Assembly: GCA_030704615.1 (NCBI GenBank)
Contig: CM060733.1
Coordinates: 15,872,001 to 15,936,000 of the forward strand
DNA: 64,000 bases
Origin: Takakia lepidozioides
Lineage: Eukaryota; Plantae; Bryophyta
Direction: 5' to 3'
In this document: positions 606 through 64,000 of the stretch, one piece after another
Numbering within the stretch: position 1 is the stretch's first letter
How the letters are laid out: each line of letters begins with the position of its first letter
Made by a program: the position numbers and the translations under genes
Notes under the pieces: model-generated
What the model was told of the DNA's origin: nothing
What the model saw: only the letters and a program-made list of their open reading frames with translations
The model's database searches: none

Positions 606-630
606 TTAAGTTCAGCTTTGATGAAAGATT

Positions 631-1842: not shown

Positions 1843-2016
1843 GTTGTAATGTTGTGACTCGAGAGTGAGATGCTTAGGAACTTGGAGATAACCCAGCCTA
1901 GAACACAAGCAGCCGATTTGTAGGATGACACAACTTTGTGTAGGGTCTAGAAGAGCTGACCACACAGAAAAGCTTGCATGCAGTAATGCTACAACTATGA
2001 ATCGGATAATAATCCT

Positions 2017-14141: not shown

Positions 14142-14364
14142 CAGCGTCCGAGAAATAATTTCAGTTGAACCAGTCAATGACCCCTCATTCTGAAAACCAA
14201 CCGGCTAAGTGGGTTGGCAGTTGCTTCCACTTAATGGTAACTGCAATAGTCAATTTCCTATGTGAACATACTCGGTAAATTTCCGAAGGTTTCAATTTTC
14301 ACTCGGAAATCCTCAAAATCAGTCGGCTAGCATGTAATTGGTTGCCGGTTCTCCCCGTTGGTTG
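14142..14364. mobile_element. 223-bp insertion with an 8-bp target-site duplication (hAT-like MITE)
   Basis: AAGCTGTT at 14134-14141 and 14365-14372; only one copy of this 8-mer at the paralogous site (~3170). TIRs are weak, so a microhomology-mediated deletion in the left arm is an alternative. Confidence 0.5.
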
Positions 14365-27286: not shown

Positions 27287-30200
27287 CTATGCAGGAACAT
27301 TGTATGTTGGCAAGTCCTTGCTGTTGAACAGAATGAATTGCAGGAGATTATGTTTGATGGAGCTGGTAGCCTCCTGCACTAAGGCAGTCTCTGCATCTGT
27401 GAGTTCACCTTTCCGATAATTACTGAGAAATGCTATCAAGCTTTTCACTTGGTATTTATCAACTGCAGTTGTTACCAACTGACATAAAAGGTCAGTCAAG
27501 GGCTCAAACTTGTCGTGGAAAATGAGTTCAAACAATGGGTCGAACAGAAACTTCGAAAGGTCCTCAATCTCTCCCTTCGTGTATCTGAAACATGGCCAAC
27601 TAATTCAGAAGGCAAGAGACTGACAGAGGCTCAAGAAAGCCACAAATAGAGATCAATGGGTTGGCTTTAAACTGGACATAAGATGTTACGTAGAGTCCCC
27701 AATATGTTTAAAGATCTTTGATGCCATCACTCTATAAACATTAAATGCATCCAAATGAATACAGTAAGAAGATAAGCCTGATGGTGAGGTAGCCGGGGCA
27801 GATTGTGAAGTAAAACAGGAGTCTTGCCACTCTCCCTCAAGAGGCAAAGAAAGAGATAAGATGTACCTTCTGACAAGGTCATTGAGCGCTGACTCCTGAA
27901 GCCCACATAGTTGTGACAATTTCCAGCCTTCAATTCTGTCATTTCCACAATAAACAATGCGACCCACGACACCTGACGGCAACACATCCACTCTGCAGTA
28001 CCTGTTCTCAAACAAGGTTGAATAGCTCTTAATTTTGTTTTCAGCCTTCATCCACCAGCCTGGTGAAGTTACAGATATAAACTGCAAGTTGCCAGGTAGA
28101 AGTCCACCAGTGCATTTCGGTCGGGTAATTGGAGGAAGGAAGGGCCTTGGCCATGAATGCTCTGTAACAGGCTCCTCAGAAGGGGCAATGGAGCTTGGGC
28201 AGAGAACCCTTCCATCAGGGAGAAGAGGACGGGTAGCCAGCCTCATAATCGTTTCTGCAAGGGCCTTACCTGCTTCTTTTGAGCAGAATTTATCTAGCTT
28301 CGGCACTTTCTTACCACAGCGTACACAGGCTTCCCGTGGAAAAGATGGCACTGTCACTGGTTTGAAAATATCCGTCCACAATCACTCTGCCATCATAAAT
28401 AATGCCCACCTGACAAAACCAACAGTGTATTCTATGGATGAAACGCGTACGATTGGTGTCATCAATACGATTTAACCATTATAGACACTTCTGGATAGGA
28501 CATCCATCACTAAACTAATACCTTATTAGATATCAGTCAAAAAAACCTTTCAAGTTCAAGACAGCAGGGGAGGGGAATTTAAGTGCAATGTTGACAACCT
28601 TGTTTATGGCATGAAAAAGATCTAGGTCAACATGTCTTTCACCGCATGTGACGAGCAATGAGCATTGTTGCTTCAGTTTCCGTGGGACATCCTCTTGTTC
28701 ATCTGCAATGCAGCGCTATAATCATGAATGGACAGTAGTATTGGTCAGAAATGCACCATGGAAAATCATCTATCCCCTGCCTTCCCCTCTGTCTACTCTT
28801 TTTCTTTCTGTGGTTCACCTGTGCCCCTCGGAGGGTATCTATGTACCTAGTAATTTTCTTCTCTATTTATATGGACATATTCGACCCTTGCCATCATCTA
28901 CTGAGTGGAGGATTAAGGCTTTTGAGTGCCTCTACTACAGATTGTTTAATGATAAGCAAAATGGCTGTGAAATGCACCTGCACTCTCCTCGGTTGATGCT
29001 TCCTCTGGATCTTCATCTGGCAGTGGTTCTTCACACTCGTCCGCAAATCTCACGCTCCCTATTTCCAATCCCCTAGTATTCAGAATATCGGTTTCTTGCT
29101 GCAGTGTAATTCCAAAATAATCCCAGCCACAAACAGTCCTCTCTCCTTTGGAGATCTCGTTTGGAAGCTTTACATTGCTCCCATGGACCATTTCAGGCCT
29201 GCATGGATGTAAAAACTTCCTCTTCCTTAGCTTCCAGTGGACATAATAAATATTTTGGTTTTTCCCTCTGTGTCACACTCTTAGGTTTTCAACACTTGGG
29301 CCCTTGTAAAGAATCAACATGCAAAAGGAAAATTCACTCATGAGGGGCAAGATTCAAATTAAATGTCATAAGGCATGCGCAGCAGGACAACTGCCGCTAC
29401 CTCAATATCTCCATCCAGCATCAATTCTTTTGCACAGGTTCTTGCATGTCAGGCTCTCAATTTAGTTCACACAGTTTGCCAATCTGTGACATCTATGATG
29501 CAGCGCCATTCACAACACAGGCAGATTTGGCAGATTCTCTCTCAGGCATTCTGCCTTCCTGCCATGGTTGAGTCCTTGGTTCTGTGGTTGTACAGATCCT
29601 TGCTGTTCTAAGTGCCCATCGGGCCTCCTGTGGGCATAATAAATGTCTTTCTGTCCTTCTTTGTTTCCTTCTGTGTCTTTTGGGCCTCCTGTGGACATAC
29701 TAAATCTTGGTATGCTCGGGTGTCCAACTTTTTTGAGTGCAATGGACTCTCCAGTGTTTTCCTACTGCCACAAAACATGGGGCGGTGGATATTTTCGTCC
29801 AATTGGACTGCAATAGATACATCAGAAGAGAACTTATGGAACTGCATATCAGGTGGACATGGAAACCAGCCACTCTGACAACTCCGCAAGTGTATCGGGA
29901 GATATTCTTGGTTCTCCGTGCCGATAGGATCTTGCAGCCTAATTACCTGTCTGCAGCCCTTTCTCCCTCTCATCTAGGGCATTGGGGAGGTTCAGAATGG
30001 GCTCCACAGTCTGCGGATAGAGACTGGTAGGTGGGAAAACCTGCAACATGACAGACTAAGCCCCACTTGTGCTGGGCACTACAGGGAAAGTGAAGAACAT
30101 TTCGTCTTTCACTCCCCTTTACACTATGAAATATGTGGGAGATTCCTGTCAATTCCGGGATGACCAATCTCTTGCGGTATTCTTCCATTATGAGGATCAG

Positions 30201-33200: not shown

Positions 33201-36200
33201 TCCAGAAAGAGCCTGACAAATTATGGACCAAAAGAGGCAGATAGTACAAAACCGAAACCACTCATACTCCACAATGGAGCAGTGAGGATTCAAAATGAAA
33301 ATTGGGGAAGCTGACAAAATGTTAAAACATAGATGAGCTGATACACTTACATGTCAGGGGGAAAGGACTTTCATAACATTCTAGCATGAGAGAATAAAGC
33401 CTACTTGGAAGACTCGTGAGGCCACCAACCTGCAGAAATCTCAAGCTTGTGCGCAGCAAACTCGTCAGGTTTGACCACTCCAGTCATTTTACCACATCGC
33501 CTATATTTTCTAAGCTTGTGTCTGGTTTGATCTTGCAGGCCGGTAGCTAGAACCAACCAATCGAATGGTATCTCTTTGCCATCTAATAGAACAACTTTGT
33601 GCCCTTCGCGATCAATGCCCACAACATTTCCCACAACAAGATTCACTTGACAATCCAGCCCTAGCTTGGGAAAGGAATCAGCCGGGCCTGGGTCAATATC
33701 CAGTGGTGAGGAGGAAGCAGAGCGAAGACCATGATACCCAGTGGAAGAGATCAATGTGAGATTAATGAACTGCATTTTGGAGCTCAGAATTAGTGTATGA
33801 AGAAAAGAGGCCCCTGCTCGAGAGGCCCCCACTACGACAATCCTGGAATTGACTACTGCCCGAGGATGGCAGACAAGTCTGTGACTAGTCAGGAAGAGTG
33901 CACATTCAAAACCATGATATTCACCCCTTGAAAAATGCTCCAAGCTGTTATCCGCCAAAGGATCCCTGACAGTGCTCTCAACAACATTTTCATCGCCAGC
34001 TTGGACACTTTCTTGAATGGTTGGCATCCCACTGGCTGGCTGCTGGCTGGATAGAACTGGGTTGATTGGGGTCAATGGGCGAGTGCCCACACTCTGAGGT
34101 TTCCCGGTTGTGCTTTCCACTGGGGTGCTTTCTGCAATACTTACAAGCTCAATTTTGCCATGGACCATGCTTGCCTGCTTAGCCTCTAGAGTGGGGTTTC
34201 CCTCAACACTTTCCAGATTAGGATCCGGAAGAATGATGCCCTCAATGCTCCCTGGTTTAAGTCCATCAGGGTAGGTTCCATCAGTGCTTCCCAACTTAGG
34301 GTCTTGAAGGGTGCTTTCCTCCACACTTGTGGGATTAGTATCCCCAGGAGGGTTTCTCTCAAGGCTTGCCAATAGAGGTTCTGCAGGGGTGCTTCCCTCA
34401 TTGTTCATTGGCTTAGATTCAACAGGGGTGCTACCTGAACCGCTTGTTTGATTACTTTCTGGTGTGCTTACTTCCTTGGGTTCCACCAGAGCAGTCACCT
34501 CAACACTTTCTGGTTTTGGTTCCACAGCAGTGACTCCCTCAATGGTTGCTGGTTTGGATTCTGCAGGGGTGCTTCCATCAATGCTTGTTGGCTTAGGTTC
34601 ACCAGCAGTGCTTGCCAACATGCCTTCATTTGCAGCATCCGAGCTAGACCTTTTTTCGCTGATGACGGCTTTTCCCCACATGCGTGCAGGTGCAACATGG
34701 GACTGCTGCCGGCCGGCAACAAGCATCAAGTCCTCCACAACTTCTGGCAACTCCTGGTTTGGGAAAACTGGACAGTACAACACTGTTTTCCCCATCTCTC
34801 GCATAATTTCTCTCAGAAAGAACCGGCTATGACCCCTGTAAATGGGGTTCAACACATAAAGGATGATTACAGCGTGATTTTCACCTGGATGGTGCTTCAT
34901 ATGCAAGAGGGAGTCAAGGTCAAAGTGGCTTCCCAAATGCTCCAAGGGAACCCTCTCTACAACCATCGCAAACCCCACAATCTGGATCCCCAGAACGGCA
35001 ACTAGGGTCACACCTGCAGGTTCCTCAAGCCTATAAGAGTCGAGGCAAAAGTTTCTCTCATTTGGAAATTAGGTGTGGTGGTAAACAGTAATAAGGCAGG
35101 CTTCAAACACAGCTGCGATTTTGAGCCCACTGATACCCAACCAGAAACAAGTCACGCTGGACTGAATGCTCACACCATTTATGCTGGGAGTTTGATTCTA
35201 CAGTTAAGGGGAGATGACTTCATTTGACCTTTCTTATCTCTCAGAGAAAACCCTGGAAACCAAGTCCACAAAGATTGCTCGCTGCCTATGAGATAAAAAC
35301 AAAAATGATAAAAACTGTGGTCCTTCGCGTAAAGCTCCAATTGCCAGTTTAGCAAAAGAGATACCCTCTAGGAATAAAGCTCCTAGATTGTCAGGCACAA
35401 CGGACTTACAATTTGGAAATGGTCTCTTTATTAGTTCCACAATCATTGTTTGGTCAGGAAAAGCTTCCAGCAGCTCCGCCAGTCCATCTGCATCGAGTGA
35501 CTTTGAAGGCCGGACCTCAAAGCCCTGAACACCAGATTGAACCGTTAAAGCAAGTTAGGGAGCCCTTTTCTAACTTCTTCCCCCTTTCTATGCTACTTCA
35601 TGCACAAATAAATTTGGACATATGCTCTCCACCTCCTGGTTTTCCTACCCAGCTTGCCCAGTCTCACCAAAAGCATTTATCTAGAAAATTCACCTTGTCA
35701 ACTGCAGCTTCGAATAGTTTGTTCACATAACAAGATGGCATACCAATAAGGCTGTGCATGGACATGCATAAGTGGCTTCATATCATGCAAGCTTCCTCAA
35801 TCTGCAGGTTCTGTTCCACGGTGTGTAGAGAATCTTACTCAAAGAAAAAGTGCTCAAAAGCTACAATAAACATAGGAACTCTTAGGGCGCATATATTTCT
35901 TTTGAGAGCAAAACAACATTGCAACCCACTTAAGACAAGGGATGCGCGGCCAACGGCTCTAAAGCAAGAAAAGATGGCAGACCATATCACAGCAGATTGC
36001 CCACTTTTGCCAAAGGATCAAAACTAAGCAACAGTACTCGGACCATAGACAATAAGCTTCCGAAAGTTTTGGGGACAGCCTGTCATTACTCAACTGATTG
36101 CTACGCACCAGAGAGAGAGAATTTCGATGAAGCAGGTACATTGAAGTCATGTCTGAAAACAGTGGCTCATCGGATTTGACGTCAGGTGCAGGCCTGGATA

Positions 36201-45757: not shown

Positions 45758-46973
45758 ACATGGAATCACACCTTCAGGTGGTGTTTGAGCGCTTGAGAGC
45801 GCACGGATTGATTAAATTACATCCGGGGAAGTGCAAGTTTCCACAAGTAGATTGAGTATCTGGGCCACATGAAATATCCTGGAGGATTGGGGGTGCAGCA
45901 GACTAAGGTAGAGGCCATCGCATAGATTCCACGCCCCACGGATGTGAGCCGAGTTTGAGCTTTCATGGGGTTGGCAAACTACTATAGACGGTTTGTCAAG
46001 GGATTTAGTGCTATTGCAAAGGCTCTAACCAAGCTGACCAAGGTAGACCAGGAGTGGCAGTGGGTAGATGAGCAAGAGCGAGCTTTTCAGGAGCTCAAGG
46101 CGAGGTTGACCTCGGCGCCCATCTTGAGACGACCTATCAGGGGGCGTCTCTTTCAGCTGCATACAGATTGGAGCATGTTGGGGCTTGGAGCGGTGCTCAC
46201 ACAGGTGGATGATGAGGAAAGAGAGTTCGTAGTGGCTTATGCTAGCCGCTCAAACAACGCTGCAAAGTCTAAGTATAGCTCATATGAGGGGAAATGCTTA
46301 GCTGCAGTGTGGGCCGTGGCACACTTCAGGTGCTATTTATACGACAATCTCTTCACCCTTGTCACGGATCACCAGCCACTCAAGTGGTTGATGGAGTCAG
46401 ACAAACTTACGGGGAAGCTTGCACGGTGGGCACTTATACTCCAAGAGTATGACTTTCAGGTTATGCATCGCCCGAGTTTGGTCAATAGGGATGTGGATGG
46501 ATTGAATCGCAATACATGCACGCCAGCAGGATGACACTGGAGCTCGGTGGCATGGTGGGACGGACAAGGAGATGGTGCCGGGATGGCATACATCTGTCTT
46601 TTTGTGTATCTTGGCATCCGGAGGTCAGGTTGGACCTACAACAGGGATGATTGTAGACGGAGTGTCTGAGGACCCTGAGGCTAGTGATGAGCCAGGTGGT
46701 GCTAGAGATATACATGAGGATTCGGTTGTGTTAGACTACCTCCACACTGGAGACACGGCAGCTAGTGTGACTGCCAAGGAGAGGGATCGGATCCTACAAT
46801 GAGCCAAGAGGTTCAAGTGGGAGAGGATACACCTTCTTTGAGTGTAGGAGGATGGTCAGGTGAGGATCGTGCCTCACCCAACACAGCGTGCACGGTTAGT
46901 GCGGCATGTCCATGAGGAGTTGGGGCATTTTGGAGTGCGACGCACTCATAGTCTACTGTAGTGGCAGTATTGA
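45758..46973 (+). mobile_element. Ty3/gypsy pol fragment (RT C-terminus, RNase H, start of integrase zinc finger), degenerate
   Basis: LHPGKCKF, FMGLANYYRRFVKGFS, LHTDWS..GLGAVLTQ, VVAYASRS, LVTDHQPLKWL, KLARWALILQEYDF, RHVHEELGHFGVRRT; cut at 46973 by the CACTA terminus. Confidence 0.93.
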
Positions 46974-46989
46974 CACTATAGGAAAAGGG

Positions 46990-48885: not shown

Positions 48886-51060
48886 TTGGTAGTAAACGGG
48901 CTGGTCTATTTGGATCAGGCCTTAGCCACAGATGTGACCGTATCCCTTCAATCTCCATGTCCTTTCGTACGTTTATCGTATCCGTCTCCCCAAAGATAGT
49001 CTTCAGAATGTTCTCGCAGAAGTTCTTCTCACAATGCATGGGATCCAGGAGGTACCGCTGCAAGAGGTTCTGAAATGCCAAATGTCCTCCCATGAGACCA
49101 AGTTCTATGGGCAAAAAAAGTAGAATATGTGGCAGAAGTTGTCCATGTTACTACATTCTGCTTTCAACAACTCCACGATCATCTCCACAGTGAGGTGTAC
49201 GACTTCAACATCTACTGCATAGTAGTTACACTGACTTAGGAGTTGGTGGAAGGACTCCTGACAGTAAAGGTAATTCCAGGAAGCACAATGTGAAAGAAAG
49301 TGAGTGAATGGGGGGGGGGGGATTCATGCACCTTCCAGTATGGCAAATCCCAAAGGATTGTCCGGCGCTTCACCCTGTGCTCCATGGCTGGATCCGCACT
49401 ACTTCCGTCTCCCTCCAATCTCCATGAACGCCTCTTTCTCCTTTGCAAATTGCAATGTCTCCTCCGGTGTCACAGCATTTGGTGCCATTCTCTTTTCAAC
49501 ACATCCATTGAAGTGCCTTCCTGCTCGTCGGTAGGGGTGGTTTCTTGCAAGGTGACGTCGATGCCCCATGTATATTGTCTTCCCTAGTGGCTTTGAGTGC
49601 CGTGAATCCACATAGGGCCCACAAATGGGGCACCCTTTGTAGCCCTTCGTCTTGCAACCCGCAACAAGGCCATATGCGGGGAAATCATGGATTGACCACA
49701 TGAGTATGGCACGGAGGGTGAAACTCCGTTGCCCTACTGGTTTCAAAATGTCATAAGCTTCAACTCCAATCCATAGTTCCTGTAGCTCTTCAATCAATGG
49801 TTGCAAATACACATCTATGTTTGCATTTGTCACGGACTCCTTGCCTGGAATCAAGAGAGACAACATGACAAAGAATTTCTTTGTTGTCAACCATGGTGGC
49901 AGGTTGTATGCCACCAACTGCACGGGCCATGTGGACCATGTGCAACTCTTTGATCCGTATGGGTTTACTCCATCCGTAGATACAGCCAATCGCACATTGC
50001 GTGGGTCCTCGGCAAAATCGGGCCAAGTTGCATCTATATGCTTCCATGCAAGGGAATCTGGGACATGCCTTACCAAACCATCGTTTGAGGCATTCCTGGA
50101 ATGCCAAGTCATGAGCTCACTAATGGTCTTGCATTTGTACATTCGTAATAGACGGGGGATAAGGGGAAAGTGCCTCAACACCTTGGCTGGCTGTTGTAAC
50201 CTGCCCACATCATGGTATCGGGCTGCACCGCATTTGGGGCACTCCATAGCATCCTTGTACTCTCTTCTGAAAAGTACATGTCCTTTTGGACATGCATGTA
50301 TTTTCACGTAGTTGAGGCCGAGCTTCCCAATCATTTGGTTGGCCATGTGACAGCTTTTTGGCATTTCATTTGGTTGTGGAAGCAAGTTCAGCCGAAGCAA
50401 AGAGAACAACTCGTCCACAAAATGGTCTGAGACACCGTGGGTTGTGCATAGGTTCATCAACAGCATGGTGGCAGCAAGCTTTGTGGATTTGCATCCCTCG
50501 TACAGTGGCACACATGCTTCTTCTAGTGTCATGTGTGCAGAATTCAATTCTCCATCTCCACCTCCTTCCACGCCTTCCCCCACGTGAATGCCTTCATTTC
50601 CTGCGTCATCACCATCCCCAGTTGTCGCAGCGCCGTCCCCCTCTTCAGCATCGTCCATGATGTGGAATGCATCCTGCAACATTCGAGTAATCTCCACCCC
50701 TCCGTCCATGCCTGGTTCATGTCCTGCGCCCATGACATAGTCCTCGTCTAGCCTGTCTGTATGGCTCCCTCGGGGGTGTGCATTATCCAATTGTGCCCAC
50801 TCCTCATCGTCTTCGTCTGCAGGTCCATCTCCAATCCACACCCGAAATGCTTCATGTCTTTTGTGGTGAAGGAGATGTGTGCGCACACCGTCCTCAGATC
50901 TACTTGTAGTGCCCAAACAACGTTCACATGGGCATGGCATCCTTGAAAGCCCAAGGGCTCGGGCACGTGCCACTTCTCTTTCCCACAACCTGTCATCTCG
51001 GGTGTTCTGTCTACAGGGGTGATTAATTGGAAGTCCTCCGCATGGACGAGGGGAACTCAT
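48886..51060 (-). pseudogene. CACTA TnpD/Tnp2 transposase (transposase-associated domain plus Transposase_21), frameshifted and 3'-truncated
   Basis: ORF 49399-51060: MPCPCERC, KIHACPKGHVLF, CPKCGAARY, VLRHFPLIPRL, DPRNVRLAVSTDGVNP, YNLPPW, IDVYLQPLIEELQELW, WSIHDFPAYG, GYKGCPIC. Frameshift at ~49410, then ILWDLPYWK, intron 49070-49331, LDPMHCEKN. Similarity ends at ~48886. Confidence 0.93.
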
Positions 51061-52760
51061 TTTTGTTGGGGAGCCTCTTCAATGCTGTTTGTGCATGCCG
51101 TTGCAGGGGGCCGGATTCTCCTTTGCAGAGATTCCTCAATTTGGCTCTGCCACTCCCATTTCACTACCGTCAATTCCCTCCTCCTGCAATCTCAATTTGA
51201 AAGGTTCAGCCGCACGTCCTTTGGCAGAGAAGACAGTTGACATTTTATACCAACCGGTAGATTCCACAACATGATGAAAAGTTACACTCAACAGCAAACC
51301 ATTTAAAAGCCATCACGATGTTTCCCATCATAACTAGAATCTTTTCAACAAGACACTGAGAGAAATGACCAAAATCGACTCAAACAACGACATCCTGGAA
51401 AACGACCTGTCTCTACAGTTCGTGTGTGTGTAAGGAATCAGAGGACGTACGTGGAATTCCAATTTTCACGATTGACGACGTTGTGATCTTGGGCATATGG
51501 TTGAATGTGTATGAAATGTGTGCATTGAAGTGTGAACAACCTGACTACAAGGCCAAAACCTGCGCCACTTGTCTTAGGCCATCTCCAAATCACGTTTCGG
51601 CGGACAATCCCGTTCCGTTGCCGTGAAATTGCACCGTGGCGGGAAGGGAGTCCATTTGTGTGGCTCTATCACCATGGCGGGAAGGGGAGCATGTTAAAAA
51701 TGGAGCATTGCCCTGCCTTTTCACTCATTTGATGTTTGTAGCTTCTTCCACCATCTTTCTTACTTAATTCTGATTCTTGCAATGCTGCCCTTGAGACGGC
51801 AACTGCAAGTGACCGGATCCTTTGATCGTCGCATTCAAAGACACTTACGTGTAGCAGATCGTAGACCCCCAAATGCCTGGAGAGAAAGCCAGAGGGCAGT
51901 CAATGCATGCACGGTTGTTTTGCACTGGTTGGGACGGAGTGGGGTGCAGAGGATGCGTGCTGTGCCCGAGTTCGCATGCCTAGCATCCTGCAGCCGGCGG
52001 CTTTTGCACGTTGGGCAGCAGTACCCTCTGTTGTATGATTACCATTTGTGGTATAGACTCACCGGCCTCCCCTGTCCACTTGGGTCTTGGGACAGCGACT
52101 TATGGAGTATGTAGACAGAGTTGCATGTCGCGCAGGTACACCAAAATCTCCCATGTAACATAAACCCATTTCTCATTCATGCTTGCATGTGATCCACGGG
52201 GTAATTTCCATGTTCTCCCAGCTGATGTGGGTTCACAAATTCTCGGTGTGTAGGTGTGTGTGTGAGGACCTGGTGCGATGGGTGTCGAATGGACCCTTCT
52301 CTGCGATGGGAGAACCACTACAGTTGAGTTTGTTTTTGCTGAATCATTTGGTAGAGCACTGTGTTCACTTCTCACACATCATGCGCATTTTCTCCAAGAA
52401 TGCATGTAAAGCAGAGCCATACACGGCATCATTGCAGTGTGTTTCCTTCGCTTAATTTTGAACGAAAAAAGTTAACGGATCCATGTCAGTTGTGTGAATC
52501 ACTACATCTAGTTGTCTGGAGGATTGTAAGTGGTTTAGGGTTTAACGTCTCAAAGTCGAAAAGGCCATAGTGTCGGATGCACGACACGTGTTCATATTTG
52601 AAATCAACAATGGCCGGATCTTCACTACAGATCGGGGGGGTGTGTGATCACACTCCCCTCCTTGTCCTTCTTTCCTCCTTTGCGTGTCTTGGTCTTCCTC
52701 GCTCGTCTTTGTCTTGGTCATGGTCTATGTCCTCACTCGTCTTCATCTTTGTCATGGTCT

Positions 52761-53060
52761 ATGTCCACGCCTAGTAAGAAGCGCTCGACCGCCGAGGCAG
52801 CATCACCTCCTCCCACTTCTGCACATTCCAGCCCCGCGGTGCGAAGGAGCCCCCGCCTGGCTCGACTGAATCCGGTACAGATGGCGTCGGTGCGAGAGGG
52901 AAGGCAGAGCGGTGGGCGGTCTTCGAGTTCGGATTTTGACACAAGCGAGTATAGCATGGGCGACGACGATGAGGTGGAGGACAGTTCGGAGGAAATTGCA
53001 CCTCCATCTGCAGAGTCTCTCCAAAAGGTGCGCAAACGGCACAAAACTGCTGCGCATGAG
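52761..53060 (+). CDS. First exon of an unknown gene (basic/Ser-rich and acidic, RRSPRL motif); downstream exons not found
   Basis: ATG at 52761, 100 open codons (MSTPSKKRST...VRRSPRLARL...DDDEVEDSSEE...KVRKRHK), then donor GTGAGT at 53061; a LINE fragment follows. Confidence 0.45.
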
Positions 53061-53109
53061 GTGAGTTCTACCCCTACTTGTGTTCTTGTTTTCTGGGCGT
53101 TGAGTTCTC

Positions 53110-53790
53110 CTGAAACTGAAACTGGGATGCACATATCCATAAAGTTGTTCAAACGGATGTCGTAGTATACAGGGCAGTAGAAGAAGAAGTGTTCCTCAGT
53201 TTCAATTTCCTTGTTGCGCCCTATGCAAGCTGGACATAGGCGGTCCTCCCGTTGCAGGTTTTCCCATCTGCCAGTCTCTATCCGTAGGTTGTGGGAACCC
53301 ACCCTGAACCGCCCCAATGCCCTCAAGAGGGAAGGAGGTAAGGGTGCTGAAAGGTAATTTGATCTGAAGATTCTATCATCGCGGAGCACCAAGAATGTCT
53401 CTCGATAGAAGTGGAGCTTTGTTGTGAGATTGGGTAGCATCCAAGTTCTCTTGACATGTAATTCCATAAGCTCTCTCCGAATGAGTCTGTTGCGGTCATG
53501 TCTGGATGTGATGTCCACCTCATGTGGGTTTATTGGTAATTGGAAAGCAGTAGAAAGTCCGTTACGTTTCAATAAATTGTCCACTCCAGCATACCAGGAG
53601 TTCCCGAAACCTGCAGCTTTGGGGGCTGCTATTTCATGAGCCATGAGCCATGAGCGGCATGAGCCATGAGCAGAGTCGTAAGCGTGGAAAAAAACATGAG
53701 CAGCACTATTTTCCGGAAATGAGTGTCCGCGGGCATAGGGTTTAGGGTGCCACGGTCATAGGGGGAGAAGGACCTCCCGATGAAGGAGGT
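53110..53790 (-). mobile_element. RTE-like LINE-derived element, internally deleted, with (CAGTTT)n tail
   Basis: NSWYAGV...RALGRFRVGSHNLRIETGRW...DRLCPAC...IETEEHFFFYCPVYYDIR, followed directly by a 3'-end-like sequence and CAGTTTCAGTTTCAG; (GCTCATG)n at 53634-53670. Confidence 0.8.
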
Positions 53791-54083: not shown

Positions 54084-54794
54084 TCACGTTGTCAATGGGA
54101 CTTCGACTACTCTCAGAACTAGCTCATGGGTCATGGGGCTCCTCCATGTAAAGTCGATTGCAGCCGTTGTACCGCCCCTAGTGATGTTCACCACAATGTC
54201 CTGCCCTTCAATCATACCACCATCGAAAATGGAAATCTTCACGTTTTCGTCGTCCACACCAATGCGAATGTCCCCATACAATGGAGAAGAGGAGCGCACT
54301 CCTTGAGGAGAATAGGTCTCTCCGATGGAGTCCACCCACGTCCAGTGGCAGCAATTCCACCGCAACAGCATAGCAGTGCGCCTTCTTCTGCATGGTTGAC
54401 CGTCGTAGCTGGGAAAATCGGAATCGAGGATGCGCAGGAGCCACGGACTCCTCAGACCAAGATCGTCACCCCGCTCGAAGGCGTAGTGGCCTACGATATA
54501 CTCAAAAGCCACCAATGTTTCCACAATCGAACCAGTATCTTCTGTGTAATCTGTGTACCAGATAACAATGTCTCCCGATGTGGCCGAATACATTGCATAA
54601 TCGATGCCTCCAAATGGGCAGTCGTCCCGGTTCCGGAAGCACGGCATCCATGCAAAGGAGGACCTGAGGACAACTTGGATGCAGATGACAATGACCTTGC
54701 GGACAGCTACGAAGCCCTTAGATTTTGGAAATGATGCGAAGCGGAAGAGCAGTCCGGCCTCCAATAATGGAGCATCTGGGTCCCACGTACCCAC
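54084..54794 (-). CDS. Unknown protein, paralogue A of a head-to-head pair (start uncertain)
   Basis: 236-aa ORF sharing DYAM, SGDI, FERG, SPW, RWNCC, YGDIR, DGG, DIVV, ELVLR and EVP with 55171-55746. Confidence 0.75.
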   Translation of the reverse strand: MGTWDPDAPLLEAGLLFRFASFPKSKGFVAVRKVIVICIQVVLRSSFAWMPCFRNRDDCPFGGIDYAMYSATSGDIVIWYTDYTEDTGSIVETLVAFEYIVGHYAFERGDDLGLRSPWLLRILDSDFPSYDGQPCRRRRTAMLLRWNCCHWTWVDSIGETYSPQGVRSSSPLYGDIRIGVDDENVKISIFDGGMIEGQDIVVNITRGGTTAAIDFTWRSPMTHELVLRVVEVPLTT

Positions 54795-54857
54795 CGACGG
54801 AGGTGGATGAACCCATACATCTTTCTCATCAAGAAGTTATAGTTTGAGATCTGCCAC

Positions 54858-54921
54858 CGAAGTCCATCCCCCCGGATGGAAATTCGGCGCCGCATTTACA
54901 TCGAAGAGGGGATGGACTTCG
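54858..54921. promoter_or_regulatory. ~64-bp imperfect palindrome centred on a copy of the 22-bp motif, between the divergent paralogues
   Basis: CGAAGTCCATCCCC ... GGGGATGGACTTCG outer stem around GGAAATTCGGCGCCGCATTTAC (54878-54899). A regulatory role is inference. Confidence 0.55.
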
Positions 54922-55055
54922 TCGTGTCCAGTGGCTATCGGCCCACCTGGCAGTGAGTGCCCATAGTTTGCATGGCAGGGTAGGAAACTGAAACGGCTAC
55001 ATTCATGAAGCAGCCAATCTTCATCGGTCCAGGATTCTGTAGGGGGGAAATTTAA

Positions 55056-55746
55056 ATGTGCCCTGGAGTGTTTGTGACGAATTGCAGCGTTAGCTTGAAC
55101 TTTTTCCAGCCACCGCGCTGCTCCTCCTCCATCCGGGAGCTGCTGTCATTGAGCGTACACCGCTACTCTTTTGTGCCGCCGAAATCCAGCCGACTACCCT
55201 TATCATGGCCACGATTATGCTATGTTCAAACCAGAATCAGGAGACATCATTGTCTGGCTCTCTGTTTTCACAGACGCTGCTGGAATCAAGCAAGAGTCTT
55301 TGCGCGCAATGGAGTATCTGGAGGGCTATTACCGCTTTGAGCGAGGTGAGGGCGAGGGTCAATGCAGTCCGTGGGTCCTGAAAATTGTTGACCTCGATAT
55401 ACCAAGCTGGAAAGGGATGTCGGACAGATCACGCACGGCCTCGCTTTGGCGCTGGAACTGCTGCCAGTGGACCAGGGAGGACGGCACCGGGGAAAACTAT
55501 ATACGTGCAGATCACTCCGCTCTTCCAGTGTATGGAGACATTCGGCTGAGTTGCGAAGACGAATCGCACGGGCACATGAGGCCCACAGTGACCTTGTCAA
55601 TGTATGATGGTGGTATCATTGATGGACATGACATTGTCGTCGGCTCCAGCAAGGGCAGCAGAACGACCGAATTGCAGTTTACCTCGAGGTGCCGCAGCAG
55701 TGATGAGCTTGTTTTGAGGGGTATCGAAGTTCCGTCGACTTGGTGA
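55056..55746 (+). CDS. Unknown protein, paralogue B (ORF 55171-55746; N-terminus probably from ATG 55056 across a frameshift at ~55168)
   Basis: Colinear with paralogue A over ~175 aa, roughly 45% identical by eye; both stop three residues after EVP. Confidence 0.7.
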
Positions 55747-56001: not shown

Positions 56002-56767
56002 TTGAATGCGGCACCGCATTTCTATGTCGGCATCGAAATGCGGCACCGCATTTCCATGTGGGACAATGAAATGCGGCACCGCATTTCCATGTGGGACAAG
56101 GAAATGCGGTGCATCATTTCCGTCCAGGTACACGAAATACCAACACGGGTCTATAAATTGGACAGACAACGAGGTTGGCATTGCAAATGCGGCGACGCAT
56201 TTCCAGCTTGGCAATGGAAACTTCTTTTTGGACAGGGAATGCGGTGCCGCATTTCCGTCCAACACTTCGAAAAGTGTGACATTTCCGACCAGCGCGATGG
56301 AATGCGTTACCGCATTTCCGTGAGAGGGTCTGCAAATGGACAAATTGCGATGTCCGTTCTGGAAATGCGGCGCCGCATTTCCATGTCCGTCATCGACTTT
56401 TTTTTACAATGGAATGCGGTGCCAATTTTTGCTGATGGGCCTGCAGTTCGAACAACGACCATCCCCAATATGGAAATGCGGCACCGCATTTTCAATTCCA
56501 CCATCTCGACCTCCTTGTTCGACCTCCTTGTTCGACCTCTGTAAGCGTGGTGGCATCCATGCAATGAGCGGGAGAGGCCAAAACTGGCGTGTGGACAAAG
56601 GAAATTTTGGAAATGCGGCACCGCATTTCAATCGGCCGATTACTTTTTACTATGCCAACATTGAAATGGAAAATTTAGTCCCTCCCCTGTTTTGGAAATG
56701 CGGTGCCGCATTTCCAAAAGAGGTTCTTAGAGTTGCCAAAATTTTGGAAATGCGGTGCCCCATTTCT
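56002..56767. repeat. Array of ~13 palindromes GGAAATGCGGYRCCGCATTTCC downstream of the ParB-MTase-like gene
   Basis: Starts at 56002, 56034, 56067, 56100, 56183, 56235, 56298, 56361, 56410, 56472, 56609, 56694, 56746. Confidence 0.92.
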
Positions 56768-56903
56768 GATTTTGGGAGCGTCGTGGTTTGAGCGATTGTG
56801 TGGCTGGAATGCACACTGGAGAGGGGTCACGAATGTCTGGCAGAATTTCCTTTATATACTCTGGAAGAGAATTTACATTTACAGAGACTTCATTAAAATT
56901 CTA

Positions 56904-59900
56904 TTAATCTTGAAAATCATCCGAATCCTCATCCTGTTCTAGACTGTCCTGCTCCGCCTCCACCCCCTCAGTGCCTTTCTCATCTCCAGCGGACTGCTCG
57001 TTGGCCAGGCTTTCGAAAATCCCATCTTCCCCTTGCGGAACTGTCCATCTCACCTCCGTTGGGTCGTCTTCCTCCCTGTCTGCGTCGCTCTCATCCGCTG
57101 AATCACATATGTACTTTCGTACCCGTCTACCTGTCTGAGCTGCTGCCAACTCTTTCCTTATCCTTCTGTCCTCCCTAGCCCTCTCCAAAATCTGCTCTAC
57201 TTTACTGGGATTCTCACTTCTTCTAATCGCTGTATTTGCGAGTTTAGCTGCATAACTAGGAAGGGAGTAGTCCCTCACCGGGCTCGTCATGAAGTCGGCC
57301 CTCGCAAAGAACGGGACATTCTTCCTGGCAGGAAGTGTAGGCCCTACATGTTTCGACCCGGACCCTGCAATCCTGCACATGACAATCATCAACGAGACGA
57401 GAACCACAGTCGGGAAATTCGTTTGACATAAATGACCCAGAAGGCTTTGCAAACTTACAATGTTTGCACTCACTCGTATTCCGGGTTCTCCTCCGCATCA
57501 ATGTCCACTGTGTCTTCCTCGGACTCCGACGAATCCGAGGAGACTTCCGCTCTGTCGGGAGCCTTAACATTCCGTTGCAGCCCTTCCAGATGGGATCCCC
57601 ACACGGATGAATCCTCCTCGTAGGCAAAGAGGTGCCGGTCGGAAAACCGCCCAGCCCACATTGAGGCACCTGTTACAATGCCATCCACACATTACCACAT
57701 GGCGCTTCAGATGTTGCGAACTACATCCTAACGAGAATTTGCAGAACAGCATAGATCAAGATTCTGCATACCTGTCCCACAGATGAGGTCGAGCACTGTG
57801 CCCTCCACGTCTGTGCATGTCTCCATAATTGTCTGAATGAAGGCAGGGCTCCGAGTCCGTGAGTACCGCAGGGGTTCCGTTGAAGTGAGGCTATGAGGGA
57901 GAAGTTCCTTGGGAACGTTGTTGAACAGAACGTCGTAATCGAGTGGGTCGCAGTTCGGGTCAACCTTTCCTCCCTCCTTCCGGAAAGCAAAGGTGGAGTT
58001 CTCCTTCACAAAGCAGTATGCATCGAACTGCTTCGTCTGCATACACAGGGGGAAAACGATTAGAAACCGAATGCGGCACCGCATTTGAAAACACCCAAGC
58101 AAATGAATGGACGAGTGCCAGTGTCGTAATCACCTTCTTCCCTTCCGACCGAAGGCCCAGTGTGTTGATGCACGTCCACTTCTTTTTCAGAATCGGGACG
58201 GCGCTCTTGCGGGTCCACTTCGCAATTCCTGTCTGAGTGTTTTTTCCTCTGCTCGCCAGGACAACCACACAGCCTCTGTCGTCCAACACCATGCGGGCAA
58301 GCCCGAATCCTTTCTTCCAAAAGTCCTCCGAGTACCTGTTCCAAGATGGCAAAGCTTGCAGTCCTTCCACAGGCTCTCCGTCCGGAATATCCAAGATGAT
58401 CATATCGCAAGACCACTCGGTGGCATTTCCGCCCCTCCTACAATCCTTGTCTGCACACACCCTCTCAAAGAACGAGACCATATTCTGAAATCCTGGGGTG
58501 TCGGAAGGCTCTTCGGCAGTCGCCTTCTTCAGTGCTCTGCCCTTCAGACCCTCCATGGTCTTCATGTATGCCAACTTGGCTGCCCGTCCATCCAAAGCCG
58601 CCAAGAAACTCTCATTTACACACTGGACTACTGTTTCGGGAGCCACTTTCGGCCTCTTCATTTCCACCGGCTCGAAAGGGTGCCCCCCTGGGGGGTTGAA
58701 GAGTGCCTTCTTTGCCGAGCCAGTTCTCGTGCCTCTCGTGACAACGGTGGGCACAGGGGAGGCAGCCTGCGTTTGGGGGGTGGGCTGGTTGCAAAGTCTC
58801 CATCGGAGTCCTCTTCCTCACCCTCTTCCTGAACAGGCTGTTTCTGCTTCTTCGTTTTGGCGGGTGTCACAACAGCTGCTCCTTGCTGGCGAGTCCTCTT
58901 CTTCGACCCCTTCTGTTGGGCCTGCACAGCTGCATCCACCGTCTTTTGTGCCATCTCAGCTGCCTTTCTGGATTCTTCCAGAGCAGCAGATTCCTTTGCC
59001 GACTTTGGCCCAGCAGGGACACGTCTTTCCTTTCTCTTCTCTTCTGCCAAGGCGTGCAGATCTTTCTCAGACTCGTCAACAATACCGCCAGACATGTCCA
59101 GGTACCACGGGCATCCAACGAGATGCGCGGGATGCCATTGTTTCTGCATCTCGGGTGTGTAGACACAGCTTGGGCCCGCCACGGTCCAAGCCATGAAGAA
59201 CGGGGGCTCTTGAGCCAGGGCCCCTGTCTGAAGGAGCACGTATTTCATATACCTGCAAGGCAGTCAGCATGCGTGAGCAAAAGTTGAGACCAACCTACTC
59301 GCAGAGTGCCACCGAAAACATAAAATGCGAATGCGGTGCCGCATTTCCGAGACAAACCTCGTAACCAGGCTTCGCATACAAGGGCAGCTGTGCTTCACCT
59401 GTAAACAATTCGCATTGCAGCTTTCCCCGCTCCCTCCTGATGTGTAAACTCCACGCTCCTTCTTGCTGTCTGTAGCTCTCTGGCGAAAAGGTTGTCCTTG
59501 TACGCACATCTGAAACGTGTCACGTAGTCTTCCAATGTCTGTGTTCCATCCCATTTGACGTACAAGCCGAACGAATTTGTGTGCATTACGACTTGCTCCT
59601 TCGCATTCGACATTACCTGCGATTCCCAAATGCATTGTCACGTAGCAGTTCAGGGAATTCATGTCAGAAAAGCAAATCTGGGGAAGTACCTTGAATTACC
59701 TGGAACCACCAAGTCATACGGTTGAGCCACACATCCACTGCAGGGTCGGAAACTTCCAGTGGAAAAGACCACATTGTCCTTATGCTCTCGGATGCATTCC
59801 AGATCGACAGCCACCGTGTCTGCCATTTCCGATCCAATGTCAGGAGCTGGAAGAGAGTGGCTATTGCTAGGAAGGAACTTCAGTGCATTGAAACCTCACC

Positions 59901-61813
59901 TTCTCTTTCGCCTCCACACATGCCGTTGAGAGGTGATGCAGTTTCTCCAATTGCATGGTCGGCTGCATGGCCCGAGAATAGTGTTTTGCAATCTCGGGGA
60001 TGAAGTCCTTTCCAAGTGCCGGATCTGCAATTGCCACCAGCTTCACAAGCTTTGACTTGTATTTGGTTCTGGACTTGACACCGGCTTCCTTCAAGTGCTC
60101 AGTCAATGACTGCAACGTTTTGACCTGCCCCTCACTTTCCATGAAGAAGCGTTTGGCATGGGCCAAATCCAGCTTGATGTTTGACTGCCAACAAAAACAT
60201 GCAGAAGCGTTACATTCGATTCATGTGGAAACATTACTGAAAATTGGGGAAGGATGAGCAGAGGGAAATTGGAGGACGACTTACTTCGTATATCACCTCC
60301 ACCATTCCATCCATAGTGAGACGATACCATGTCCGGTCTGTTTTTGCAACGGCTTTCTGAATGAGCTCGGGCTCCAGCATTTCCGCAAACATCTGCGGAT
60401 CAGTGAGACCAGTTTTCCTCACCCTGTACAGCATATGTGCCATGTGGGTATGCACGTACGCATTCTCAGTGACCCTGCAAGGCACACTCTCCAGTTCAGT
60501 ACACGGAAGCACGGAAACAAACCAGAATGGAAACCGAAATGCGGCACCGCATTTCGAACGTGCTAGGGAGGGTATGAGTATCTTACGAGTTGAGGTCCGC
60601 CATGGCATTCTTGAGCAGGGAGGAGTCTGCCGCCTTCACCTTGAGGATGACACACTCCACCATGTAATGCCAGCCAATGTGCTTGGCATGGTTCTGCTTG
60701 ATGTACTCCCACCAGGCGAGAAGTCGGTGATTCCCGTCCCACACAAAGAACATTTTACCCGACATATGGCCGAAGTCTGGATCACCCTTCAGCGTCGCCT
60801 CGAATTCGTCGTTGCGAGTGTGCCAGTGGGTATCCCACGTTGACAATTCATCGGCAGTGGGTCCACGAGTTTCGCCGTCCTCATTCTCAATGGAAACGTA
60901 AAACGCTGCCGATCCCAGACGGTACCCTTCTCGAAATGCGAACTTGAGCTTATCCACATCTCCGGGAAGGGCCTGCCTGACGATGGGAAGGGAGACCATG
61001 CGACAGAGTGGGATTCGAAGAGTCCGCTGGAATACCCTGCTGCCCAGAACTCTGCCAATGCTACTGTGTGTCTCCTCCAACATTTTATCCGCTGCACTTT
61101 TGAAATCCTCCGGAGACATGTCTGTAGGTGCCGGTAGTGGCTGAGCAGCTGGAGCATCCTCAACTGGAGCTGCACTCTGGGGCCTGTGTGCGGGCAATTC
61201 TGCCATTGCAGAGGCCTCCTCCGGGCCTGCTTGCTCATCGGTGGTGAGGTCTTGCTGCGAACGTTGAGCGGCAGCACCCTCCTCCGGTACCAAATCGAGA
61301 TCAACGGTCGATCCCATTGCCTTCGCTGCAGCAGAGTCGGCCCCAACATCTGCAGGCGGGAAATCCTCCAGGAACTGAGCTTCAGCTCGTGGAAGCGGTT
61401 TTGCGGGAGATTGTTCGGCCGTCGCCCTGATTGCCTTCTGCTTCCTCATCCTTGCAGGTGAAGGTGTCTGCTGCAATTGAATCTGTCTTTACCCTGCTGC
61501 TTCATTCGCGTTGGGGGGGGTGAATCGGCCTGAGCCGGTTCAGAAGCCAGTAGAGGGACGGGCTGCTTCTTCTTCGACTTTGCTGGAGAAGGGCCCGACC
61601 CCTGCTGGCGATTCTCCATGACCGAAGAACGCGAGTCGATCTCTGGGGCTTTGAACTTGCCCTTCGAAGCCGCGTCTTTGAATCGCACAGGGCTAGGCCC
61701 GGCAGGAATACCCGCGCTCGGGGATCGGGTGGGTGTACGTGCTGCAGCTAGCTCCTCGGACTCTTCCTGCGGCTCTTCGGATTCCTGCGATCCCTCCAGC
61801 ACGTCCACCTTTC
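56904..61813 (-). CDS. Spliced gene with a ParB/Srx-like domain and a beta-class N6A/N4C DNA-methyltransferase-like domain (two frameshifts; 5' end unresolved)
   Basis: Exons 60587-61813 (frameshift ~61488), 60285-60474, 59900-60184, 59700-59819, 59399-59616, 58134-59252 (frameshift ~58770), 57772-58036, 57474-57669, 56904-57372; GT-AG with consistent phases. ParB-like: IPLCRM..VRQALPGDVDKLKFAFREGY...FFVWDGNHRLLAW. MTase-like: CDMIILDIPDG...LARMVLDDRGCVVVL...TRSPAFIQTIMETCTDVEGTVLDLICGTG|ASMWAGRFSDRHLFAYEED. Confidence 0.72.
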
Positions 61814-62458
61814 CTGTTAGGCATGCAAACATGTTCTGCATTCAAGTCTCCTAGCATTCAGTCTAAGAATTACAGAAGCAAAATGGGGGGTTCGGTGCTC
61901 GATCAGCTGCGCGCAGCCCGATCGCATGGAGCTCTCACTGGTGGCTGGGTTGCCTGAGTGGCCTGCTGCTCGGAGATGGCAATCTCCTCCTGTAGACGCA
62001 TCTGCTTCCTCCCCTTCGGCATTGGCCTACGTCCGAAGTATAATTTCCGGAGCTTGCGACGAGGTCTCCTGTCTGGTGCACGAAACTCCCCCCTCTCAGG
62101 TTCGAGCATAAGAAGAACAGAGAGAGGGAAAAGGGGCAAAGAGTGCAGATGGAAAGGGCGCGAGAGGGGTGACTGAGGAGACACGACAAAAGTAGATGAA
62201 ACGGCGGTGATGCACCACTTGGGTTCGAAAGGGTTGGACGAAAGTGTCTCCTCGTGGACTTTGCGTCATTACGAAATTCGAATCGTTCAGGGTACGCCTG
62301 CCGTCCGAAAAACAAACATCATTATCCAACGGTCAGGCCGCGCCGCCTCATGCCCCTTCAGTCAGATAGAGTGCCGACATGTGCAGCAATTCCGTTGCTC
62401 CACGTGTTCACATTTCAAGGCATTTCCGTCCCAGCGTCTGATGAGTTGGAGCGAAAAT

Positions 62459-64000
62459 GCGAATGCGGCGCCGCATTTCCGTTAAGTACCATCACGAAGC
62501 TACACATCCGTACTTGTTGGAAGAAAATGCGGCACCGCATTTCCGTTCCACCTTCACATACCTTAGTTGTTGAACGGAAATACGGTGCCGCATTTCCGTC
62601 CCACAGCTCCATGTATGAGATTCAAAAGGGAAATGCGGCGCCGCATTTCCGTTCTGGAATGTCGAAAGGTGCGATTCGGACGGGAATGAGGCACAACATT
62701 TCAGTTCCCGTGGTTCATGATTTTCAATGTGAACGGAAATGCGGTACCGCATTTCCGTTCCCCCTTCACATACGTTAGTTGATGAATGGAAATGCCGTGC
62801 CACATTTCCGTTCGGGAAAGTATAGAGGTCTCACCTGGACAGAAATGCGGTGCCGCATTTCCGGTCTCGAAAGTTTGAAGGTCTCACATGGATGGAAATG
62901 CGGCAACACATTTCCGTAGCACAGCTCCAGGCCCCATATAGAAAACGGAAATGCGGCGCCGCATTTCCGTTCTAGAATGTCGGAAGGTGCGACTCGGACG
63001 GAAATGCGGTGCCGCATTTCTGTTCCCGTTGCGCACGATTTTCAGTCAGAACGGAAATGCGGTACCGCATTTCCGTTCTGTAGAGTATTAACGTCTGACG
63101 CTGGCGGAAATGCTGTGCCGCATTTTCGTTCCACAGCTCCATGCCTCACATACAAAACGGAAATGCGGCGCCGCATTTCCGTTTTGGAATGTCGGAAGGT
63201 GCGACTCCGACGGAAATGCGGTACCGCATTTCAGTTCCGATGTTTCAGGATATTTCATCAGAACGGAAATGCGGTGCCGCATTTCCCTTTTGAATCTAAT
63301 ACATTCCGTTCTGGAATGTTGGGAGGTGCGACTCGGATGGAAATGCGTTGCCGCATTTCAGTTCCGATGGTTCACGATTTTCAGTCAGAACGGAAATGCG
63401 GTACCGCATTTCCGTTCTGGAATGTTGGTAGGTGCGACTCGGATGGAAATACGCTGCCGCATTTCAGTTCAGATGGTTCACGATTTTCAGTCAGAACGGA
63501 AATGCGGTACCGCATTTCCGTTCTGGATAGTATGAATGTCTCAAGCGGTCGGAATTGCGCTGTATGAAGCTGTCGGAATCGCACTCGGCTCCATGCATCA
63601 GATACAAAATGGAAATGCGGCGCCGCATTTCCGTTCTGGAATGTCGGAAAGTGCGACTCGGACAGAAATGCGGTGCCGCATTTCTGTTCCCGTTGTTCAT
63701 AATTCTCAATCAGAACGGAAATGCGGTACCGCATTTCCGTTCCACCTTCACATACCGTGCTTGGTGGATGGAAATGCGGTACCGCATTTCCGTTATGGAG
63801 AGTATGAATGTCTTTTAAGGACGGAAATGTGCTGCAGCATTTCTATCCCTCAGCTCCATGCATCAGATACAAAATGGAAATGCGGCGCCGCATTTTCGTT
63901 CTGGAATGTCGGAAAAGTGCGACTCGGACGGAAATGCGGTGCCGCATTTCTGTTCCCGTTGTTCATAATTCTCAATCAGAACGGAAATGCGGTACCGCAT
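62459..64000. repeat. 53-bp-period array of ~29 palindromes GGAAATGCGGYRCCGCATTTCC upstream of the ParB-MTase-like gene; runs off the window
   Basis: Starts at 62459, then 62523+53n to 63265, then 63339, 63392, 63445, 63498, 63551 (degenerate), 63611, 63664, 63717, 63770, 63823, 63876, 63930, 63983. The 31-bp spacers fall into several recurring classes. Confidence 0.95.

Follow-up and report, generated by a model that had tools for sequence, protein, structure and literature searches.

The window analysed here, a stretch of 64,000 nucleotides from the bryophyte Takakia lepidozioides (contig CM060733.1, positions 15,872,001 to 15,936,000 of the forward strand; coordinates below count from the first letter of the window), carries on its minus strand, from 61841 to 56904, a large intron-containing gene whose product joins a ParB/sulfiredoxin-like domain to a C-terminal domain resembling N4/N6 amino-methyltransferases. 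We refer to it as the ParB-methylase-like gene. The gene was derived from a chain of open reading frames (ORFs) and consists of nine exons and eight introns, all of the introns being of the GT-AG type and 80-146 nt long. The ORFs involved include 61446-61841 and 60583-61476 in exon 1, and 58658-59248 and 57960-58754 in the exon 6 region. The reading frame is broken twice, near 61487-61489 and at the C-run 58775-58780; the summed exon length of 4117 nt is two bases below a multiple of three, and an extra base at each break gives 4119 nt, corresponding to 1372 codons and a stop. The exons are the following.

60587..61841, minus strand: exon 1, with the start ATG, a low-complexity N-terminal region and the ParB/sulfiredoxin-like domain; frame break near 61487-61489; donor GT.
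60285..60474, minus strand: exon 2, with AG/GT sites; conserved in the related loci L020, L012 and L079.
59900..60184, minus strand: exon 3, conserved in 26 loci; junction 59900/59819 confirmed by a spliced contig of run X9.
59700..59819, minus strand: exon 4, both junctions confirmed by the spliced X9 contig.
59399..59616, minus strand: exon 5, acceptor confirmed by the X9 contig; donor GT.
58134..59252, minus strand: exon 6, with a conserved segment, a K/E-rich linker and the N-terminal half of the methylase-like domain; frame break at the C-run 58775-58780.
57772..58036, minus strand: exon 7, which holds motif X and the first part of motif I (RSPAFIQTIMETCTDVEGTVLDLICGTG); its profile (A3) has matches among PDB sequences.
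57474..57669, minus strand: exon 8, which completes motif I and holds motif II (ASMWAGRFSDRHLFAYEED), followed by an acidic tail; alignment A4; junction position common to the relatives.
56904..57372, minus strand: exon 9, the C-terminal tail with a conserved Y-x-LP-x-YA...KLA motif and then the stop codon; tblastn match to locus L001.

A preliminary description of this DNA, made from the sequence alone, had proposed nine GT-AG exons with two 1-nt frameshifts. The same structure was obtained when the gene was re-derived on the minus strand, and the observation of the gene itself is confirmed. The motifs named in that description also lie where it had put them, namely FFVWDGNHRLLAW in ORF 60583-61476, followed by DMIILDIPDG, RMVLDDRGCVVV and VLDLICGTG.

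Contigs of four public runs were compared with the gene, among them runs X4 and X5, which are independent DNA data sets. In run X9, which is taken to be RNA by guess only, a 353-nt contig skips introns 59899-59820 and 59699-59617 (GT..AG on the minus strand) exactly, which shows that the ParB-methylase-like gene, or a near-identical copy of it, is transcribed and spliced. Splicing of 57772 to 57669 gives GASMWAGRFSDRHLFAYEED, as had been predicted, and completes motif I of the methylase-like domain. This junction lies outside the RNA contigs and is supported only by conservation in the relatives: the readable relatives end one exon with ...TG and start the next with AS..AC..GRH..ALEED. At window position 57398, in intron 8, contigs of both X4 and X5 have a 4-base insertion (TAAT or CAAT) relative to the window, which suggests copy or allele variation inside the family.

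Pfam searches with the ten exon ORFs of the gene gave no match at E<=1, owing to the strong divergence of the domains and to the introns that interrupt them, and the two domains were examined by homologue profiles and structure prediction. The N-terminal one is delimited as follows.

60587..61023, minus strand: ParB/sulfiredoxin-fold domain, IPLCRM...FFVWDGNHRLLAW, with DGNHR invariant in 30 homologues (alignment A1); identified with AF2 (AlphaFold2), Foldseek and VIA, an independent structure aligner.

The exon containing this domain has 29 exon-sized homologues of 33-49% identity, all of which end at the same exon boundary. Within a library of 1.84 billion representative proteins, 1151 representative clusters match the ParB-like exon profile at E<=0.001, so that the resemblance goes far beyond chance. 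The A1 profile recovered neither ParB nor sulfiredoxin (Srx) when compared with PDB sequences, its sole match being a spurious one to eL24, and a tblastn search of the ParB exon against phages gave no match. An AF2 model of window:60586-61101 (minus strand), made with the homologue alignment, has a pLDDT (predicted local distance difference test) of 89.6. Every one of the best 30 solved structures that Foldseek finds with it is a sulfiredoxin, Noc, ParB, KorB or PadC protein, with Arabidopsis Srx (6ky4, E 6e-3, probability 1.0) at the head of the list, and VIA gives KorB (Z 7.5), SerK (7.4), Srx (6.8), PadC (6.4), a pNOB8-like ParB-N domain (6.2) and SbnI (6.2). Each of these scores is moderate; since both lists consist nearly entirely of members of the ParB/Srx superfamily, we take the modelled fold of the window's own exon as shown, in agreement with the preliminary description. 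Residues D122 G123 N124 H125 R126 are unchanged in all 30 aligned sequences, and by their position, considered without a residue-level superposition, they would be the counterpart of the phosphate-binding motif that reads GERRxRA in ParB and GGCHR in Srx.

The methylase-like domain was analysed exon by exon in the window, and the fold of the whole domain was modelled on a relative from the liverwort Riccia sorocarpa, KAL3677308.1 (P0178, 1207 aa), which is 33% identical to the window gene in exon 1 and 26% in exon 6. In P0178 the ParB-like domain spans residues 173-322, and PF01555 matches residues 1112-1162 with E 5e-5; its score of 23.7 bits and that of another Riccia protein, P0176 (26.2 bits), are both below the cut-off of 26.7. 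For the window itself, the top PDB sequence match of the exon 6 profile (A2) is CcrM (E 0.17), aligned at vDLIFADPPYNL...VLKDDGAI, that is, at motif IV. The exon 7 profile has four PDB matches, every one of them a beta-class DNA methylase (DpnA, E 0.048, or M.RsrI, E 0.17) aligned at motifs X-I. Neither result is significant alone; taken together, two independent exons lead to one and the same small family, each at the position that colinearity predicts. The exon 8 profile, which is too short, found no methylase in the PDB, and a homologue search with the 264-aa methylase-like ORF, limited by its length window and by divergence, found no match.

An AF2 model of P0178:880-1190, for which the alignment included the exon 6 and 7 rows of the window, has a core pLDDT of 70-93. 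Foldseek places CcrM first among the matches to this model (E 3e-12), and also finds M1.HpyAVI, M.BceJIV, MboIIA, RsrI, the rotifer N4CMT and PvuII. VIA returns Z scores of 14.7-12.9 over about 190 residues, with M.BceJIV, CcrM and PvuII at 14.7-14.4, MT-A70 enzymes at 8-11 and everything else at 5.9 or below. In addition, hhalign aligns the family with a Lactobacillus phage methylase at 96.8% (E 2.5e-10) over motifs X-I-II, which covers the C-terminal half only, and phage methylase PHROG families match Riccia members. Taken as a predicted structure, a beta-class amino-methyltransferase fold with motif IV preceding motifs X, I and II is thus shown for the family, and for the window by alignment; the motif order IV-X-I and the fold proposed in the preliminary description are borne out for the family by the exon profiles, the Riccia model and the hhalign comparison. 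The matches to PHROG families and to a phage methylase make it plausible that the gene was acquired horizontally, from phage or from bacteria.

Among P0176, P0178, P0179 and other Riccia paralogues, several carry the automatic UniRef name 'Trimethylguanosine synthase' and the name of others is 'DNA methylase N-4/N-6 domain-containing protein'. The former name is unsuitable, because the motif order is permuted and because of the outcome of the fold search, in which beta-class DNA methylases stand far above all else; a TGS1-type RNA cap methylase was ruled out on the same two grounds.

The catalytic loop of the domain is located at the following position.

58377..58391, minus strand: motif IV-like loop D-I-P-D-G replacing (D/N/S)PP(Y/F/W), assigned from the sequence and aligned to DPPYN of CcrM.

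The canonical motif IV, (D/N/S)-P-P-(Y/F/W/H), is therefore replaced by D-I-P-D in the window; Riccia has D-L-P-S/T at this place, most moss-associated copies have D-(V/I/Y/M)-P-(E/D/R), and the aromatic residue is kept only by a fern copy (DVPF) and by the metagenome locus L051 (DIPW). Motif I reads LICGTGAS in the window, where one glycine of the pair is present and AYEED comes next. In Riccia it reads FAGGWGAT, which keeps G-x-G and precedes VAET, and in moss copies SASTG or HAMTG. Motif II retains the acidic residue that follows strand 2. Catalysis is doubtful because the loop reads D-I-P-D and not (D/N/S)PP(Y/F/W), and as this defining feature is missing we file the domain as methylase-like and not as methylase. 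The preliminary description had already pointed out that DIPD departs from the catalytic DPPY; this is correct, and the departure holds across the family.

The ParB-like exon is present in 80 moss- and peat-associated metagenome loci, about 25 of which also have colinear relatives of exons 6, 7 and 8. Annotated relatives, found by cluster look-ups, come from Riccia sorocarpa and from Adiantum ferns. Riccia has 26 paralogues of the C-terminal domain, four of them with a precomputed PF01555 assignment, and the exon 9 motif Y-x-LP-x-YA...KLA also occurs in Riccia P0198, P0201 and P0202. Conservation of both domains extends across the family; many of its copies contain stop codons, and many paralogues are intact. 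A single-copy host gene is ruled out by this multi-copy family with its many decayed copies, and the evidence supports a gene that is multi-copy and transposon-borne. We found no description of a land-plant ParB-methylase family in the literature that was searched, and public records give automatic names only.

The surroundings and introns of the gene contain many copies of a palindrome, AATGCGGYRCCGCATT, of which the window has 37 against 0 expected, all between 54881 and 63948. Its 16-bp core is part of a 22-bp palindrome. The copies are arranged as follows.

62462..64000, no strand assigned: upstream array of AATGCGGYRCCGCATT with a period of about 53 bp, running off the window.
60538..60553, no strand assigned: single palindrome AATGCGGCACCGCATT in intron 1, from the palindrome search and the intron map.
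59330..59345, no strand assigned: single palindrome in intron 5, from the palindrome search and the intron map.
58070..58085, no strand assigned: single palindrome in intron 6, from the palindrome search and the intron map.
56005..56764, no strand assigned: downstream cluster of AATGCGGYRCCGCATT, from the palindrome search.

A comparable layout is found in locus L003, a contig from a moss-associated metagenome, where a 9.4-kb array (47-9388) lies directly upstream of the ParB-methylase-like gene. Its unit of about 127 bp holds TTGAAATTTCAA (37 copies) and CTCGGTACCGAG (23 sites within one mismatch), and single CTCGGTACCGAG-like sites occur at 11878-11889 and 14289-14300, in two gaps between exon ORFs that are apparent introns. 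The L003 core CGGTACCG resembles GCGGYRCCGC of the window. The layout of an array with intronic copies thus recurs, and is not universal. Short-read contigs of X5 jump among palindrome copies at about 56770, 59330 and 60538 (window 56766-60536), and we read these jumps as assembly-graph collapses at a repeated palindrome rather than as real deletions.

Of the related loci, 25 extend 4 kb or more upstream of the gene; in 13 of these a conserved partner gene lies upstream of the ParB-methylase-like gene on the opposite strand, always in that orientation. This divergent partner was seen twice in Riccia and in several moss-associated contigs. The ten best named matches in an Atlas feature search of the partner gene are all Mutator-like element (MULE) families, with a top score of 0.88, which we treat as a lead, and its protein has a Mutator-like GFMAD...W.AVR.V...C.FH stretch, read by eye. 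The partner of the relatives is apparently Mutator-like. To the left of the ParB-methylase-like gene, the window contains a transposase gene.

49399..51060, minus strand: CACTA-type transposase ORF (Transposase_21, Pfam E 1.5e-74), a neighbour listed as context.

Several other features lie to the left of the gene. Two unannotated ORFs without Pfam match stand head to head at 54084-54794 (minus strand) and 55171-55746 (plus strand), with a degenerate palindrome at 54881-54896 between them; these ORFs (54084-55746) may be part of the element that carries the ParB-methylase-like gene. A 303-aa ORF at 52733-53644 (minus strand) has a weak match (32%, 69 aa, E 5e-5) to L087:1575-1775, about 8 kb upstream of a Riccia ParB-methylase gene, and this may be either chance or a further shared component of the element. 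To the left of the CACTA transposase, 45965-46534 encodes a piece of a retrotransposon reverse transcriptase, from its RNase H part (RT_RNaseH, E 6.6e-34), and the area is a nest of several transposons. Further away, a CFAP61-like cilia/flagella gene has exons at 27686-28381 and 33401-35011 (E 1.1e-15 for the CFAP61 dimerisation domain, with a weak Pyr_redox_2 match), which fits an organism with flagellated sperm.

The explanation that we consider probable is that the ParB-methylase-like gene is an accessory gene belonging to a family of DNA transposons found in seed-free land plants, with a proposed role in self-recognition. The preliminary description had instead seen it as cargo of the neighbouring CACTA (Transposase_21) element; on that reading the element would be giant, with a length of 17 kb or more. 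In its favour, only 5.8 kb separate the gene from the Transposase_21 ORF, which has the same orientation, the CACTA-like sequence found at 46974 could mark a left end whose partner is beyond the window, and Plavaka elements of red algae, which belong to the CACTA superfamily, carry accessory genes with ParB and methylase domains (10.1101/2025.02.11.637652). Set against these points, Transposase_21 occurs in none of 88 related loci (86 metagenome and contig loci and two Riccia loci), and no palindrome is found left of 54881. No CACTA terminal-repeat pair enclosing the gene was found inside the window, where palindrome copies dominate the inverted-repeat scan and the best candidate pair agrees in 15/30 bases, which is chance level, although the right end could lie outside. 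The relatives are shown to pair with the divergent upstream gene and not with a CACTA transposase, and we consider membership in the CACTA element very unlikely. The palindromes themselves offer a different objection to our explanation, as they might be bound by the zinc-finger domain of the transposase, in the manner of ordinary subterminal repeats, with the ParB-methylase-like protein having an unrelated role. CACTA and Mutator elements usually have arrays of subterminal repeats to which the transposase, or a helper protein, binds, and most of the related loci that were checked have no array. A second subfamily nevertheless repeats the layout of an upstream array and single intronic copies with a different palindrome, which ties the sites to the neighbourhood of the ParB-methylase-like gene, and we hold binding by the transposase to be a credible, if somewhat less than likely, alternative.

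Two further alternatives concern the protein and this particular copy of it. An active N6-adenine or N4-cytosine DNA methyltransferase, marking the element or the genome despite its odd motif IV, would be in keeping with the retention of the whole beta-class fold and of D/N and P at positions 1 and 3 of that motif, with an aromatic residue at position 4 in the fern and L051 copies, and with the FAGGWGAT and motif II acidic residue of Riccia members; liverworts also use N4-methylcytosine (4mC) (10.1101/2021.02.12.428880). In most members, however, position 4 is occupied by E, D, S, T or R, motif I is down to a single glycine in the window and in moss copies, and the 4mC enzymes of Marchantia have the canonical TSPPY, unlike this family; to judge from these sequences, such activity is unlikely. 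The window copy could also be a dead pseudogene in which both frameshifts are real, as the window sequence is out of frame at two sites and relatives often carry stop codons. The independent DNA contigs of X4 and X5, however, have one additional base at both sites (after 58774 in the second), so that other copies or individuals are in frame there and the window copy is either truly shifted or one base short by assembly error. One break sits in a C6 run, a type of site where assemblies often err, and apart from the shifts no exon holds an in-frame stop. This copy may therefore be broken by two one-base shifts, or the assembly may lack one base at each; we regard a dead pseudogene as a real possibility, a little short of an even chance.

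Several observations weigh against an accessory gene with a role in self-recognition, and we give them together. ParBc (PF02195) was not found by Pfam in any family member, the long relatives having been searched at E<=0.1. In the canonical ParB clamp the N-domain is followed by a parS-binding helix-turn-helix domain and a dimerisation domain at the C-terminus; Pfam found no domain in the middle region of Riccia P0178, and neither a helix-turn-helix nor any other DNA-binding domain was detected beside the ParB-like domain. In the C-terminal domain, motif IV lacks the second proline and the aromatic residue, and motif I is degenerate in the window and in moss copies. Palindrome arrays were sought in 14 related loci and found in L003 only; the 13 loci without them include L001, L031, L087 and L088, which indicates that the palindromes are not a constant companion of the gene, and they could equally be sites of the transposase. 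The partner gene has no match in Pfam or in PDB sequences, and its identity as Mutator-like comes from the feature score and the motif read by eye. Finally, the 5' end of the window gene faces right, with 2.1 kb of palindrome array up to the edge, and the expected place of a partner is beyond 64000; exact look-ups of the ParB-exon ORF, made to reach past that edge, matched no record.

The protein of about 1,370 residues consists of a disordered region, the ParB/Srx-fold domain, a conserved helical middle, a K/E-rich linker and the C-terminal beta-class methyltransferase fold. If it is the accessory protein of a transposon, we infer that it would act on the element's own DNA. The element-specific palindromes would be its recognition or loading sites, as parS is for ParB, and the putatively nucleotide-binding ParB-like module could gate DNA binding as a nucleotide-dependent switch. 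The part of the methylase-like module would be to hold DNA, a marking role being less likely, and the outcome might be a self-recognition that aids transposition or counters host silencing. A more far-reaching version, which we offer as speculation and think quite unlikely as a whole, is that land-plant transposons carry a eukaryotic analogue of ParB-parS, in which nucleotide-gated loading on palindromes, both in arrays and in the gene's own introns, together with a remodelled methyltransferase domain that reads or marks element DNA, would provide self-recognition, autoregulation via the intronic sites and protection from silencing; such genes would then maybe be the source of the 4mC enzymes of liverwort hosts.

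The ParB-methylase helper genes of algal transposons came to notice very recently and have yet to be put to an experimental test, and the land-plant family would extend them to bryophytes and ferns. This family is large (1151 representative clusters) and includes intact annotated proteins that could be expressed, Riccia KAL3677308.1 among them. The catalytic loop varies naturally from the near-canonical DVPF and DIPW to DIPD and DLPS, and some subfamilies have candidate recognition sites around and inside the gene, so that it is directly testable whether a transposon encodes its own DNA-recognition or DNA-marking system. The family also explains, for annotation purposes, the proteins that carry the two automatic methylase and synthase names given above.

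Fusions of ParB and N6_N4_Mtase domains are well documented in phages and prophages (PMC12704722, PMC4738411). These fusions (PF02195 and PF01555) have the same two folds in the same order as the land-plant family, and its C-terminal half is detectably homologous to phage methylases. The phage genes are intronless and have a canonical DPPY, whereas the land-plant family has eight introns, long disordered linkers and D-x-P-x, and its ParB-like domain is undetected by Pfam ParBc. The 4mC enzymes of Marchantia, MpDN4MT1a/b, and the bdelloid rotifer N4CMT share the beta-class fold, N4CMT (8s9m) matching the P0178 model with E 1.9e-8. They differ in being host genes of proven activity with a catalytic (T)SPPY (canonical TSPPY in Marchantia; 10.1101/2021.02.12.428880) and without a ParB domain, whereas the land-plant family lacks that motif and is transposon-borne.

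Closer parallels are found in algal transposons. PAG2 and PAG3 of Plavaka elements from the red alga Bostrychia (10.1101/2025.02.11.637652) are likewise transposon-borne and contain ParB-like and N6-methylase-like domains, with tandem inverted-repeat arrays beside the ParB-domain gene. In these elements the domains reside in separate proteins, ParB with a 2-oxoglutarate (2OG) oxygenase and the methylase with SET, whereas they are fused in the land-plant family, for which a CACTA link is not supported. ParB-like and N4/N6 methylase accessory genes of eukaryotic transposons were reported for algae in 2025, and the Ectocarpus element Sola1-1 encodes a 1104-aa ParB-like and N4/N6 methylase protein opposite its transposase (PMC12477816), so that the novelty claimed in the preliminary description was overstated. 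The likeness to algal Sola1 comprises a protein of about 1,100-1,400 aa with a ParB-like and a prokaryote-type amino-methyltransferase domain in a large DNA transposon, encoded on the strand opposite the transposase, as in the relatives of the window gene, and proposed to bind and modify its own element; action on the element's own DNA has already been proposed for the algal transposon proteins (PMC12477816; 10.1101/2025.02.11.637652). Compared by description only, the two differ in host and partner, an alga and a Sola1 transposase as against bryophytes and ferns and an apparently Mutator-like partner, and in the non-canonical motif IV of the land-plant family. The ParB-methylase-like gene thus represents, in land plants, a variant of a kind of transposon accessory gene that was recognised only recently, and its catalytic loop is degenerate.

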